DNA of 64,000 nt from sequence record OR620964.1. The stretch is one strand, 5' to 3'. The position numbers and the translations under genes are program-made. The notes under the pieces are model-generated. The model did not search any database and had not been told where the DNA came from. It worked only from the letters and a program-made list of their open reading frames with translations. How positions within the stretch are numbered: position 1 is the first letter of the stretch; each line of letters begins with the position of its first letter. Below, piece by piece: positions 4,253-9,452 of the stretch.

Positions 4253-4416
4253 TGAGAAAACGAATACTGGCTGTAGCCATAGCACTGACAATAGAGATTG
4301 AGACGGAGCCTTACGTTGCTAGCATATTCAAGCGTTATGTACCGTACGCGCAATATCGTAATAGTGATGCATTCAATCCTATCAATGGTGCAATCTTCGA
4401 CTTCAAAACAAGCTAA
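4246..4416 (+). CDS. small hypothetical protein (56 aa, not in the ORF track)
   Basis: GTG after AAGGA; VVRKRILAVAIALTIEIETEPYV...DFKTS*. Confidence 0.4.
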   Translation: MVVRKRILAVAIALTIEIETEPYVASIFKRYVPYAQYRNSDAFNPINGAIFDFKTS

Positions 4417-4490
4417 CAAACATGGCTGCCAGCTCTTAGGGTGGCCATTATTCGTTCTGCTGCTACTCTGCGACGTGACGAGGCATAGAA

Positions 4491-4547
4491 GTCTGCAAAT
4501 AGCCGTCTAAAATAGTGCTAGTATGCGCATGATATTTATGCTATACT
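4491..4547 (+). promoter_or_regulatory. sigma70-like promoter with upstream box
   Basis: GTCTGCAAATAGCCGTCTAAAATA box; TATACT at 4542 (37-nt offset). Confidence 0.75.
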
Positions 4548-4592
4548 AGCTGTGAGCAATATGCTCATTAACTAACGCTGAGGAGCGTAATT

Positions 4593-4919
4593 ATGTCATC
4601 TTCTACTGAAATCACTTTCTCATTCTCTTACTTGACTAGCTTAGAAGTTGTTATAGGCAATAGTATAGTCGCAGACTATATGACCGTTGATGCAAATCAA
4701 AAGGAAACGTATAGCGGTAAGAGGGCTATCGACCTGATGCAAAACAGCAACATAGTCGGCGCATTGTCTCGCTTTGATCAAGCTATTGTTAATCTGATGA
4801 TTGATAAGCAAGTAGCACATGAGGAAGAACGCCGATATCAAGCAATTCAGACAGGCAGACCAGATAGACCTGAAGATGTTTATGCAGGCACCTATCTAAC
4901 TATCAGACACTGCCGATAA
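4593..4919 (+). CDS. hypothetical protein
   Basis: GAGGAG RBS. Confidence 0.75.
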   Translation: MSSSTEITFSFSYLTSLEVVIGNSIVADYMTVDANQKETYSGKRAIDLMQNSNIVGALSRFDQAIVNLMIDKQVAHEEERRYQAIQTGRPDRPEDVYAGTYLTIRHCR

Positions 4920-4922
4920 GAT

Positions 4923-4956
4923 TTGTGAAGGGCATTCTAATGAGTGCTCTTTGAAA
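4923..4956 (+). repeat. conserved intergenic hairpin repeat, copy 1
   Basis: TTGTG-AAGGGCATTC-TAAT-GAGTGCTCTT-TGAAA. Confidence 0.8.
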
Positions 4957-4982
4957 ATCTAACATGTTCTGAGGAGAACATA

Positions 4983-5405
4983 ATGAAATATCCCCGTCCA
5001 AACAATCAATACACGCTGCTTGAGATTCTGACCGAGTTGGATCTGAAAGATACACCTTGCTTAAGTTTCAAGCATTCTGATGCGCGTGGTGAATTCGAAC
5101 CAGCTATTCAGGATAGCCACGTAACAGAAGAACAGCTCCTTTCGATAGAAGGTTTGGCGGATACGCACTGGAAGTATATTAGGACAACTGACGAATGGAT
5201 TCCTGTTTTCGTGTGGGCAAAAGATAATGAACGCCCAATCACTGACTTTATCGATATTGCGGAGGAAATTGATCCGTATGAGTCGAAAGACAAAAATGGA
5301 TTCTGGTGTACTCCTAAAGGATTTCCACGCGAACAGTATTACTATCGTGATGCGCACGGTGATTATCGCCGCACTCATGATAAGAAACTCCACAACGAAT
5401 ACTAA
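4983..5405 (+). CDS. hypothetical protein
   Basis: GAGGAG RBS; ATG at 4983. Confidence 0.75.
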   Translation: MKYPRPNNQYTLLEILTELDLKDTPCLSFKHSDARGEFEPAIQDSHVTEEQLLSIEGLADTHWKYIRTTDEWIPVFVWAKDNERPITDFIDIAEEIDPYESKDKNGFWCTPKGFPREQYYYRDAHGDYRRTHDKKLHNEY

Positions 5406-5410
5406 GTGAA

Positions 5411-5443
5411 TTGTGAAGGTCATTCAGTGAGTGACCTTTGAAA
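5411..5443 (+). repeat. conserved intergenic hairpin repeat, copy 2
   Basis: TTGTG-AAGGTCATTC-AGT-GAGTGACCTT-TGAAA. Confidence 0.85.
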
Positions 5444-5489
5444 TGACAGCGATACTTGCTTGATAACTCCATTACATAAAGGATATTGT

Positions 5490-6263
5490 ATGAAAAACGA
5501 AACTGCCGTACTGAATAAATTAACTTTGCCTACGTGGGTAAATGAAAGTGTGTATATCTTACTCACTACACTTAGTGATGTGATGGTCGATCGTATATAC
5601 TCTTGTTTAGTTGGTGATGTTACTCCGACTGACAGCACCACTCCTCTGGAATTGTCTTTAAATCAGAAAATGATTATTGTAGCGTCTATGACGCCTGTTG
5701 CTTTACTGGAGAGAATAGAAGAACAAGGTAATATTCTTTCTGACTGGCAACTGTTTGATGTTATGGCCTCTAACGCATTTAGAATCATGCAGATTGTATC
5801 AACTAACCTGATGTTATTTGAAGTTAGTGATTCATATCGCAAAGAACTATTTCCCGATGATGATGAAGAGGATGAAGACGACGGTTCTGACGAAGATGAT
5901 GACTTCGATGATTGCGTAGATGAGGAAGATGCTTATAAGGGCCCGTCTGCTTTTGCCTTAGTCTCATATGTTTTGCAAAATGCATTGGCTACTCCTGACG
6001 AAGCAATGGTGTTAACACTGCCTGAGCTGCACACACTGTACTGTGATAACCAACAGGAAGAAGATATCGCCGAAGAAGAGTCGCCTAATGCGCCTGTTGA
6101 TACTCCGTTTGATGCACAAGCACGTAAGTATGAGAATATGTCTGATACTTCACTTATTCGTGAAGCTAAGAAACGTGGCTACGGATGGAATAGTGCATTG
6201 AACACAATGACAACTGAGGAACTAATTGACTTTCTCGTTGTACATGACCTGAACAGCTTATAA
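5490..6263 (+). CDS. acidic hypothetical protein with a C-terminal Rho-N/SAP-like helical motif
   Basis: D/E-rich centre; C-terminal YENMSDTSLIREAKKRGY...MTTEELIDFL. Confidence 0.7.
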   Translation: MKNETAVLNKLTLPTWVNESVYILLTTLSDVMVDRIYSCLVGDVTPTDSTTPLELSLNQKMIIVASMTPVALLERIEEQGNILSDWQLFDVMASNAFRIMQIVSTNLMLFEVSDSYRKELFPDDDEEDEDDGSDEDDDFDDCVDEEDAYKGPSAFALVSYVLQNALATPDEAMVLTLPELHTLYCDNQQEEDIAEEESPNAPVDTPFDAQARKYENMSDTSLIREAKKRGYGWNSALNTMTTEELIDFLVVHDLNSL

Positions 6264-6281
6264 TCTAAATAGGAATTTTAT

Positions 6282-7001
6282 ATGAACACACTTATCTTTA
6301 ATGCGGAAGCGGAGCACGTTGTCGATAACATCGAGTCATTGCAGGCGTTGATTGATGACCGTACGTCACCAGTAACAATCTATGGCTATGATGTTCCTAA
6401 AGAACAGGGCATGCATGTTTGCCAAGATATCGCCAGCGGTAAAATCTATTATGGCGCTGTCGAATATAATGCCGCTGGATTTGCGATGTTCTCCACACAA
6501 ACAGAAGTAGGAACATATTACTGGTTCTATGATACAAATAGCCCTCTTTACCTAGGCTACCGTTCTGGCTGTGACCGCAAACTATCTGATCTTAACAACT
6601 GGGTTTTAATTTGTCCTAAACTTCTAAATAAGGACCAGAATAAAATCACAGTATATGCATCTGAGCATATTGTATATATCCAGGCGCTGGAAACACAAAT
6701 ACGTAACCTTGTTGCACAGGCAAATCTAGATCAGGTCGAACTGTGCATGGTTGATTTAGACCAACCTTTGTGTGATTGTGATGAAGATGGTGACGTAAAT
6801 GATAGCGATGTTTCACAGGAAACTTTGGCTGCCATCATACGTGATTTGCAATCTCAATTCGGTTCTGCGGTTCAGTACAGCGAGGCAGAACGTGCTTGGA
6901 AAGATTTGTGCAAGATCTTCGGAGAAGACTTGGCCCAGCCTGTATGGACTGCGTATAAAGAACTTTATGCTAAGATGAGTATAACCGAATGTACTGAATA
7001 G
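6282..7001 (+). CDS. hypothetical protein
   Basis: AGGA RBS, 239 aa. Confidence 0.75.
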   Translation: MNTLIFNAEAEHVVDNIESLQALIDDRTSPVTIYGYDVPKEQGMHVCQDIASGKIYYGAVEYNAAGFAMFSTQTEVGTYYWFYDTNSPLYLGYRSGCDRKLSDLNNWVLICPKLLNKDQNKITVYASEHIVYIQALETQIRNLVAQANLDQVELCMVDLDQPLCDCDEDGDVNDSDVSQETLAAIIRDLQSQFGSAVQYSEAERAWKDLCKIFGEDLAQPVWTAYKELYAKMSITECTE

Positions 7002-7005
7002 CTTC

Positions 7006-7038
7006 TTGTGAAGGTCATTCACTGAGTGGCCTTTGAAA
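7006..7038 (+). repeat. conserved intergenic hairpin repeat, copy 3
   Basis: TTGTG-AAGGTCATTC-ACT-GAGTGGCCTT-TGAAA. Confidence 0.85.
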
Positions 7039-7068
7039 GACACTAATAACAATGTAAAGGAGAGTATA

Positions 7069-7515
7069 ATGGTTAATGTGCTGTTTATCGCAGCATTACT
7101 TATTGCGAGTATGTGCTGTTTGTGTTATGTACGTCCGAGAATAATGCATGGTGTCGTGCGCCTAATCAAGCGAGAGAAGTGCCCGCTTACAAAATTGACA
7201 GTTGATCCAGAAATGCCGTTATCCATTGGATTCGGTCGCTGCGTATTCAGCACTAGCCAAACAGATAGATCAGAAATATATGCTATGCGTGTACGTAGTA
7301 GTCCTAATACAATAGTGTTTACCGTGGAGAACATTCAGCCGTGTACTGCGCTGCTTACTTCATGCCTAAAAGAAGATAGCCGATTGCTTAGGCTTCTTGG
7401 ATACACCGTGGATCACATTCGTATAGACAATACTTACTATAGAGTGTTATCTACTATGACTGATGAATCCAATACACCGCCTAAGTATATTCGTTTTCTT
7501 TTGGAGAAAAACTAA
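7069..7515 (+). CDS. hypothetical protein with an N-terminal transmembrane segment
   Basis: AAGGAG RBS; hydrophobic VLFIAALLIASMCCLCY. Confidence 0.65.
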   Translation: MVNVLFIAALLIASMCCLCYVRPRIMHGVVRLIKREKCPLTKLTVDPEMPLSIGFGRCVFSTSQTDRSEIYAMRVRSSPNTIVFTVENIQPCTALLTSCLKEDSRLLRLLGYTVDHIRIDNTYYRVLSTMTDESNTPPKYIRFLLEKN

Positions 7516-7958
7516 TGAAACAGACAGTTGAACAAGATATTGATTTGATAGTGGCTGAGTTTGACAAGGCCATGGTTAGTGCTGAGAAATCAGCGTTCGG
7601 ATCTGTCTCTTACTACGTAGAAGACTTAAAGCACACCTCATTGTACTTACGTATTTATACTGGTCGCCAGTGTCGTTGGACGCGCCCAGTAATAGTAATA
7701 TCAACTATAAATGTATACAAGACAGGCAAGGGTACATTCCATGCACTGCTTGCTAAACTCAAGGTGCTTGCGGCCGAGCGGCAGTGGATTATAAAAGTAG
7801 AGAATGTGCTAATGCCTGAGTTCAGATCCTATCTGCAACGTCAAGATTTTGTAATGCATGGTGAGAGACATTGTGGAATAGGTAATATGTTTTGGTTCTA
7901 CGATAAGGCCTTACTTCAAGAAGAAGAACTGCCGCCACGTAATCCTAATGGAATTTGA
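7515..7958 (+). CDS. GNAT-fold acetyltransferase-like protein
   Basis: ISTINVYKTGKGTFHALL...VENVL...YLQRQDF resembles GNAT motifs A and B. Confidence 0.45.
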   Translation: MKQTVEQDIDLIVAEFDKAMVSAEKSAFGSVSYYVEDLKHTSLYLRIYTGRQCRWTRPVIVISTINVYKTGKGTFHALLAKLKVLAAERQWIIKVENVLMPEFRSYLQRQDFVMHGERHCGIGNMFWFYDKALLQEEELPPRNPNGI

Positions 7959-8836: not shown

Positions 8837-9372
8837 TGGCTAAAAGTCTCGGCGTCTATTTAACATTTATCCTACGCCACAAGCCTGAGTCAATCGGGCT
8901 TGAAATGGATACTGAGGGTTGGGTTTCTATTCAATCTCTTATTGAGAAATCTCAACGACCAATCACATTTGATCGTCTTATGCATGAGGTTGCGCAGGAT
9001 GAGAAAGGTAGATTCCAAGTATCTACCGATCAGATTCAGATACGATGTGTCCAAGGTCACTCAACGCTTTGTGTAAAGCGCGAGTATCCTACGGCTATTC
9101 CTCCTGATGTATTGTATCACGGCACTAGCGCTGATAACCTAGACAGTATACTATCATCTGGGCTGAACGCTAGTCACCGTCATCACCTGCACCTATCTAA
9201 CAGCCTTGAGACTGCTATTCAGGTTGGCTCAAGACGTAAACAAGAGCTTGTTGTACTGGAGATTGATTCCGGTGCTATGCATAGAGAAGGTCATACGTTC
9301 TTTATCTCTGAGAATAATGTGTGGCTAATTGAATTCGTGCCCCAGAAATACTTAACTGTAATGGGTAAGTAA
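8836..9372 (+). CDS. kptA: RNA 2'-phosphotransferase (KptA/Tpt1 family)
   Basis: LRHKP, DEKGRF, IRCVQGHS, LYHGT, RHHLHLS and VWL motifs. Confidence 0.9.
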   Translation: MAKSLGVYLTFILRHKPESIGLEMDTEGWVSIQSLIEKSQRPITFDRLMHEVAQDEKGRFQVSTDQIQIRCVQGHSTLCVKREYPTAIPPDVLYHGTSADNLDSILSSGLNASHRHHLHLSNSLETAIQVGSRRKQELVVLEIDSGAMHREGHTFFISENNVWLIEFVPQKYLTVMGK

Positions 9373-9452
9373 TGGATAATCCTAAACCAAACACCATCAC
9401 CTGTTGTCTTTATTGGTGGTGAGAAGTATATACGCTCACAGTCAGGCCAACT

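Follow-up and report, generated by a model that had tools for sequence, protein, structure and literature searches.

Three short hairpins in the stretch of DNA analyzed here, a window of 64,000 nucleotides (nt) from sequence record OR620964.1, are probably processing signals at which the RNase III of the bacterial host cuts a polycistronic phage mRNA. The window belongs to Yersinia phage fHe-Yen9-02, a jumbo myovirus with a genome of 248,678 bp whose host is Yersinia enterocolitica O:9, and a megablast search with window positions 4500-7600 returned this phage with 100% identity. Unless stated otherwise, positions in fHe-Yen9-02 are those of the window, and a record position is obtained by adding 124000. 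The hairpins are located in a long series of small + strand genes, nearly all of which are annotated as hypothetical. An initial annotation had noticed covarying hairpins behind stop codons and had offered, among other functions, an RNA processing or stabilizing element and a recombination site. Boxes of the kind recognized by RNase III, the geometry of an 11-bp helix and the likeness to sites R1.1, R0.5 and R1.3 of phage T7 favor the former option, while the latter did not hold up.

A pattern search for the 33-34-nt motif returned exactly three matches in the window, at 4923-4956 (copy 1), 5411-5443 (copy 2) and 7006-7038 (copy 3), all on the + strand, and none in 100 shuffled sequences; a looser pattern retrieved the same three in the window. 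No fourth copy was detected in the 248,678-bp genome by a loose pattern, by a search allowing 3+3 mismatches, or by a covariance model at an expectation value (E) of ≤10. This model, which was built from ten jumbo-phage copies only, scored copy 1 with 71.3 bits (E = 7e-14) and copy 2 with 58.6 bits. The three hairpins remained unmatched in an Rfam search even at E ≤ 10. A census of the genome counted ~157 hairpins with a stem of at least 10 bp, many of them belonging to a terminator family from which the three copies are distinct. Upstream of copies 1, 2 and 3, stop codons end at 4919, 5405 and 7001, that is 3, 5 and 4 nt 5' of the respective hairpin. Downstream of each copy come a Shine-Dalgarno sequence and an ATG (at 4983, 5490 and 7069), the distance from hairpin to start codon being 25-45 nt, and the downstream ribosome-binding site is not overlapped. 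Hence, the three-copy pattern and its placement between stop codon and ribosome-binding site were as the initial annotation had described them. It had also correctly recorded the pairs at stem positions 4 (G-U, G-C and G-C in copies 1-3) and 5 (G-C, U-A and U-G), and it was right that the lack of a T-tract sets the hairpins apart from ordinary terminators. A looser relative suspected at about 2170-2196 turned out to be a generic imperfect hairpin of 7-8 bp (-9.9 kcal/mol, z-score -2.1), which the covariance model missed at E ≤ 10.

Folded as + strand RNA, copies 1, 2 and 3 reached -20.5, -14.9 and -18.4 kcal/mol (z-scores -5.9, -3.4 and -3.9). G.U pairs become A-C mismatches on the - strand, which for this reason did not get beyond -8.3 to -9.3 kcal/mol in the three copies. 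Since the sense strand folds better and all local genes are encoded on the + strand, the functional form is single-stranded and corresponds to the sense strand, which points to mRNA; the motif is thus an RNA structure. From the loop downwards it consists of a 3-4-nt loop, an 11-bp upper helix, an invariant junction of a U.G next to a G.A, two invariant U-A pairs, and below these up to four further pairs, up to three of which covary and the lowest of which extend into the stop codon. The helix comprises ~16-19 bp per copy in total, and the stem is fully paired except for the one G.A. Copy 1 (4919-4960 with its flanking pairs) has a UAAU loop, the U.G/G.A junction and a 6-bp lower stem, copy 2 (5410-5444) an AGU loop and a 3-bp lower stem, and copy 3 (7004-7040) an ACU loop and a 4-bp lower stem. 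The 10-bp stem described at the outset was thus accurate as far as it went, but too small, as an extra G.U pair extends it to 11 bp and the junction and lower stem have to be added.

The kin of fHe-Yen9-02 include the Erwinia phages Y3, Alexandra, Yoloswag and the pEa_SNUABM series as well as the Dickeya phages AD1 and JA29; these relatives have been classed with PaBG and Lu11 (PMC7412058). The covariance-model scan that the initial annotation had proposed for finding further copies added none in fHe-Yen9-02 but detected one to three copies in the whole genome of each relative, always at the same locus. In the ten jumbo-phage copies, 93.9% of the cells were paired and five pairs showed double compensatory changes. 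The covariation score of these copies was reached by none of 500 shuffled sets, and slid registers also remained far below it. An enlarged set of 21 distinct copies from the related Erwinia and Dickeya jumbo phages revealed compensated variation in the lower stem at pair 10:45 (UA 14, AU 5, CG 1, GC 1) and in the middle of the upper helix at pair 22:33 (AU 15, CG 5, GC 1). Other positions hardly vary: pairs 25:30 (C-G), 24:31 (U-A), 23:32 (U.G) and 18:37 (G-C) are invariant in all 21 copies, as are the UUGU and GAAA flanks, and near-invariant are 17:38 (A-U 20, U-A 1), 16:39 (A-U 19, U-A 2) and 15:40 (G.U 20, U-A 1). Because the proteins of these hairpin-carrying jumbo phages are only 40-70% identical, the conservation of the hairpin is selected and not inherited by default.

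A loose scan of IMG/VR gave mostly chance matches, among which folding picked out seven real ones, all in contigs of 253-267 kb. A tighter pattern in viral contigs recovered the same jumbo-phage clade and two metagenomic fragments, and a metagenome search for the motif recovered two contigs. The jumbo-type motif was absent from bacterial genomes (one genome each of 185,579 species). Close relatives with 98-99.7% identity, represented by contigs in public runs, keep both the gene order and the hairpins. In public run X2, the 34-nt hairpin is present, with 3-4 differences and in flanks unrelated to fHe-Yen9-02, in two contigs of 21-23 kb (depth ~38). Both contigs start or end at the hairpin, and another genome thus shares the element. 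Another public run shows a 43-nt joint at hairpin 2 that 'goes back'; the palindrome probably misled the assembly there.

RNase III is present in Enterobacterales, and the processing of phage messages by this enzyme is textbook knowledge for T7-like phages. No RNase III gene was found in fHe-Yen9-02, as Pfam models PF14622 and PF00636 remained unmatched over the whole record while controls were matched. Therefore, the host enzyme is the likely reader of the hairpins. The determinants of E. coli RNase III have been dissected with a minimal substrate derived from T7 R1.1 (Pertzev and Nicholson 2006, PMC1540722). The shortest reactive helix between cut and loop measures 11 bp, and cleavage of the variant R1.1[WC] frees a 28-nt stem-loop. 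The distal box is a U-A followed by a U.G, where any substitution lowers binding, and the proximal box reads G-C, A-U/U-A, A-U, A-U/U-A, with G-C excluded at its position 2 (PMC1540722). An upper helix of 11 bp is present in all three copies of fHe-Yen9-02 and in 21 of the 21 distinct copies. The distal box is matched exactly by U-A (24:31) and U.G (23:32), likewise in 21 of 21, and positions 1-3 of the proximal box fit as well (G-C in all 21; A-U in 20 and U-A in one; A-U in 19 and U-A in two).

In a blind test in which the jumbo-phage model was run over the T7 genome with filters off, the best + strand matches were at T7 positions 5861-5884 (22.3 bits, E = 0.007), 6419-6447 and 1441-1465, which we take to be the upper stems adjoining R1.1, R1.3 and R0.5, respectively. 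The coordinates of the T7 sites reportedly go back to Dunn and Studier in 1983. For 5861-5884, the assignment to R1.1 is backed by the GCAA loop and the base numbering (A9:U30) given in PMC1540722, and additionally by a reporter primer from PMC6615863, where the Methods speak of an 'RNase III splice site' vector. Copy 3 shares both of its 10-nt arms with the upper stem of T7 R1.1, letter for letter. In the T7-like phage Rambo of Y. enterocolitica, a hairpin of this kind, its loop being ACU as in copy 3, begins 8 nt beyond the stop codon of ocr. Moreover, the exact upper stem AAGGNCAUUC...GAGUGNCCUU is present in 76 viral loci of IMG/VR, mostly in T7-like contigs of 38-40 kb with ACUC/UAUGAUU flanks. 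In both T7 and the jumbo phages, an intercistronic hairpin follows soon after a stop codon and precedes the next ribosome-binding site. Both have a 10-11-bp upper helix with AAGG.C...G.CCUU at its base and UUC/GAG (U-A, U.G) or CUC/GAG under the loop, and both have a non-canonical region at the scissile bonds with a lower stem beneath. Counterparts of the T7 sites also occur in T7-like phages of Yersinia, Aeromonas and Escherichia. The two kinds differ in the region below the upper helix, where T7 has an asymmetric internal loop (ACUC/UAUGAU) and a longer lower stem, whereas the jumbo-phage hairpins have a symmetric 2x2 U.G/G.A step (UUGU/GAAA) and a lower stem of 3-6 bp. They also differ in their carriers, which are an autographivirus in the case of T7 and a PaBG/Y3-like jumbo myovirus here, with three sites that all lie in one accessory operon and with cleavage as a prediction only.

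What the analysis shows directly is a structure on a defined strand with covariation and conserved boxes, its likeness to T7 sites and the lack of a phage RNase III gene; from this we infer cleavage, its place and its effect on expression. The polycistronic transcript would probably begin at a putative extended -10 element (4539-4547) and cover genes fHeYen902_160 (hereafter gene 160, and likewise for the others) to ~165. RNase III would bind the 11-bp upper helix through the distal box under the loop and the proximal box at the helix base. Cleavage would then take place at the non-canonical U.G/G.A junction and would affect either the 3' side alone, which is the situation in T7 R1.1, or both sides. 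By analogy with the geometry of R1.1 (PMC1540722), the predicted scissile bonds on the + strand are 4926^4927 (5' side) and 4954^4955 (3' side) in copy 1, 5414^5415 and 5441^5442 in copy 2, and 7009^7010 and 7036^7037 in copy 3. In each case these predicted bonds are situated immediately 5' of the 11-bp helix and 2 nt beyond the helix on the 3' side, and the U.G/G.A step coincides exactly with them. Loops or mismatches at an RNase III target lead to a single-strand cut, after which the remaining 3' hairpin is a stability determinant (PMC3867540). Cleavage in the phage mRNA would leave either an upstream message protected by a 3' hairpin or a downstream message whose 5' end is new and lies before the ribosome-binding site. 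The downstream RNA would start 25-45 nt before the start codon, and shortly after its 5' end would come a small hairpin with the Shine-Dalgarno sequence exposed (see below). With the cistrons separated in this way, neighboring genes may differ in stability and translation.

Several observations weigh against processing by RNase III. Position 4 of the proximal box is G.U in 20 copies and U-A in one rather than the preferred A-U/U-A throughout, and the available part of PMC1540722 does not report G.U at this position. The second and third matches in T7 are individually non-significant (E = 3.6 and 5.8). The invariant UUGU/GAAA junction is unlike the ACUC/UAUGAU loop of T7 and is not explained by the published determinants. 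In a few unrelated phage contigs of 55-366 kb, the same upper stem is followed by a U-tract and resembles a terminator; because of these contigs, the stem alone is not diagnostic, and their sequence context suggests that the same upper stem serves different elements in different phages. Three sites are also few for a 249-kb genome if RNase III processing were a general strategy. Finally, the public runs containing this DNA consist of assembled contigs, none is a clear RNA run and one labelled RNA-Seq is probably DNA, so that RNA ends cannot be read from them.

The genes bordering the hairpins are all on the + strand. Gene 160 (4593-4919; 108 amino acids, phrog_33843, function unknown) precedes copy 1, and in most related jumbo phages the hairpin follows its homologue. 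Between copies 1 and 2 lies gene 161 (4983-5405; 140 amino acids, unknown), which is kept in the relatives as family F2. Copies 2 and 3 enclose two orphans, genes 162 (5490-6263) and 163 (6282-7001), without homologues in the related jumbo phages compared, and the first cistron 3' of copy 3 is a further orphan, gene 164 (7069-7515; 148 amino acids). An acidic GAT/GAA-rich repeat within gene 162 (5855-5925) differs between close relatives in public runs by insertions of 6-9 nt and yields spurious weak snoRNA-like Rfam matches. Among the flanking proteins, Pfam gave one sub-threshold match to a domain of unknown function (gene 160) and nothing else, and PHROGs gave families of unknown function only, namely the one of gene 160 and two for the gene at 7515-7958. 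The ESM Atlas provided no lead for the flanking proteins. The AlphaFold2 model of the gene 160 product is confident (pLDDT 87.6), and a Foldseek search of this model against the PDB found no fold match. These searches lend no support to an RNA-binding partner encoded nearby, but they are not evidence against one.

Such a partner would be required if the hairpin were an operator for another sequence-specific RNA-binding protein of phage or host, for example a repressor or autoregulator encoded in the vicinity such as the product of gene 160. The invariance of the UUGU/GAAA junction and the stem top in 21 copies, despite the 40-70% protein identity, would fit an operator, as would the close linkage of the hairpin to the gene families F1 and F2 and its position 25-45 nt 5' of the next start codon. 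We consider this unlikely, as the conserved positions already are the RNase III boxes, gene 160 has neither a Pfam family nor a recognizable RNA-binding fold, the hairpin in G003 has no adjoining gene-160 homologue, and the downstream ribosome-binding site is not overlapped. Little probability likewise remains for a leaky intrinsic terminator or attenuator, or a passive stabilizer of 3' ends, that would act without endonucleolytic cleavage. A stable G+C-containing stem followed by UUU is what a terminator would offer, the phage's own terminators share a related AAGGG...CCCUU stem, and the same upper stem stands ahead of U-tracts in some other phage contigs. However, the G+C part is followed by three U residues only and then by GAAA, the sequence 3' of the U residues pairs with the 5' flank and covaries, which termination does not need, and the invariant U.G wobble near the loop plays no part in termination. 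An ordinary rho-independent terminator was rejected, as the UUUGAAA tail is paired to the 5' flank and a terminator scan did not list the hairpins.

The initial annotation had also seen the hairpins as bracketing accessory genes like cassettes. The gene content near the copies indeed differs between genera. Genes 162-164 are unique to fHe-Yen9-02 among the phages compared, and a gene located between F1 and F2 in Y3, AD1 and the SNUABM phages is missing from it. In JA29 the order is F2-F1-F2, each of these three successive genes being followed by a hairpin, and in G003 a hairpin occurs without an adjacent gene-160 homologue. Such differences are usual for a hyperplastic phage region and need no recombination site, and the order was unchanged in the relatives with 98-99.7% identity. 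T4-like phages offer a possible parallel in the elements named PeSLs, which combine a terminator-like stem-loop with an early sigma-70 promoter and occur in many copies in hyperplastic regions (PMC4122927). Like these, the hairpins are short conserved stem-loops in a hyperplastic part of a large myovirus genome, where they border small genes whose set varies among relatives (PMC2839356, PMC4122927). They differ in lacking a promoter and a U-tract, in numbering one to three per genome and in bearing RNase III boxes. Identity with PeSLs was rejected, as there is no promoter-like hexamer pair and no U-tract at the hairpins and only three copies exist. A sigma-70 promoter inside the motif was also rejected, TTGTGA being a poor -35 sequence without a -10 at the right distance. 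With attC sites of integrons the hairpins share an imperfect palindrome behind a gene and the ability to fold as a single strand. The suggested attC-like site was nevertheless dismissed, since the R''-L''...L'-R' boxes and conserved extrahelical bases are lacking, the flanks are UUGU/GAAA with a stem paired but for one G.A, the conservation is that of RNA pairing including G.U, and the whole-genome annotation of fHe-Yen9-02 contains no integrase or tyrosine recombinase.

We thus regard it as very unlikely that the main role of the hairpins is that of an attC-like or PeSL-like recombination joint for the gain, loss or swap of single genes, even though the variable gene content agrees with it, repeated hairpin-plus-leader modules supply short homologies and PeSLs have such a role in T4-like phages (PMC4122927). 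The strand asymmetry caused by G.U and the covariation argue for a folded RNA and not for duplex homology, the promoter of PeSLs is absent, and one to three copies per genome at a single locus with a stable order in close relatives speak against a joint as well. As a side effect, the repeated modules may aid occasional illegitimate or short-homology recombination. A combined reading, which we find doubtful, is that hairpin and leader form a portable module that is RNase III site and recombination joint at once and shuffles genes of the F1 and F2 type. Such a module could owe its presence in both T7-like podoviruses and PaBG/Y3-like jumbo myoviruses to exchange between these phages, which have enterobacterial hosts in common, and not to convergence; the invariant UUGU/GAAA junction might then reflect an extra, phage-specific reader.

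The extended -10-like element on the + strand upstream of gene 160 (TGn + TATACT, 4539-4547), as read from the sequence, is the likely start of the transcript on which the three hairpins lie. Dickeya phage AD1 has TGATATAAT at the equivalent position. A consensus promoter scan, which demands a -35 hexamer, did not list the element. Just 5' of gene 160, a terminator-like hairpin (4421-4447) is followed by this extended -10 element; in Y3, Alexandra and SNUABM_17, the position upstream of gene 160 instead holds another copy of the RNase III-type hairpin. The small hairpin mentioned above, which presents GAGG of the Shine-Dalgarno sequence in its loop, lies on the + strand at 4964-4981 between copy 1 and the ATG of gene 161 (-7.0 kcal/mol, z-score -4.0). 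Its stem covaries between genes and phages (GUUC..GAAC versus AGC..GCU). Further hairpins of this kind were seen at ~4575-4590 of the window, at 9026-9040 and 9417-9432 of Y3 (L139) and at 9131-9146 of L137. They sit 10-15 nt after the large hairpin. To judge from these patterns, the small hairpin looks like a conserved translation-initiation module of the operon. In the relatives it belongs to a conserved intercistronic module.

In some relatives, a different hairpin, here called type B and characterized by folding, replaces the RNase III-type hairpin after the gene-160-like gene or its neighbor. It was found in Y3 (L139, 9795-9832), AD1 (L141, ~4737-4775), Yoloswag (L143, ~4320-4357) and SNUABM_5 (L144, ~4316-4352). 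Type B starts with GAUUG and has a 9-11-bp stem, a 4-nt loop in a central UUAC/UUUGC stretch, a mismatch of 1x1 or larger size and a 4-5-bp lower stem. The U-A/U.G step near the loop is present here too, but the proximal box agrees less closely with the E. coli rules. The rho-independent terminators of the phage form a repeated family of ~20 copies on both strands, composed of AAAGGGUGGCC, a UUCG-like loop, GGCUGCCCUUU and a U-tail. Examples are found at record positions 124636-124659 (636-659 in the window), 190450-190475 and 207934-207957, and many are on the - strand. These terminators share the AAGGG/CCCUU stem base and the intergenic place with the three hairpins. They differ in having G+C-rich tops, UUCG-type loops and a U-tail, whereas the top of the three hairpins includes A/U as well as G.U pairs, their 3' flank is paired and a U-tail is missing.

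A T7-type RNase III signal is a known kind of element and implies no new mechanism; most likely it is newly seen in this phage group. One paper on the clade (PMC7412058) makes no reference to RNase III sites or to hairpins, stem-loops and terminators, nor do the titles and abstracts returned by a literature search on these phages. In practical terms, the hairpins flag cistron boundaries and likely mRNA ends, which is of use for annotating a poorly understood region. If the processing is confirmed, the 21 copies would constitute a natural covariation set that independently recovers the biochemically defined distal and proximal boxes of E. coli RNase III. They would also add a U.G/G.A variant of the junction that is relevant to single- versus double-strand cleavage. 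For the biology of these phages, confirmation would mean that a jumbo myovirus with no more than a sigma factor of its own also uses the RNase III of its host to tune a few early or accessory genes.

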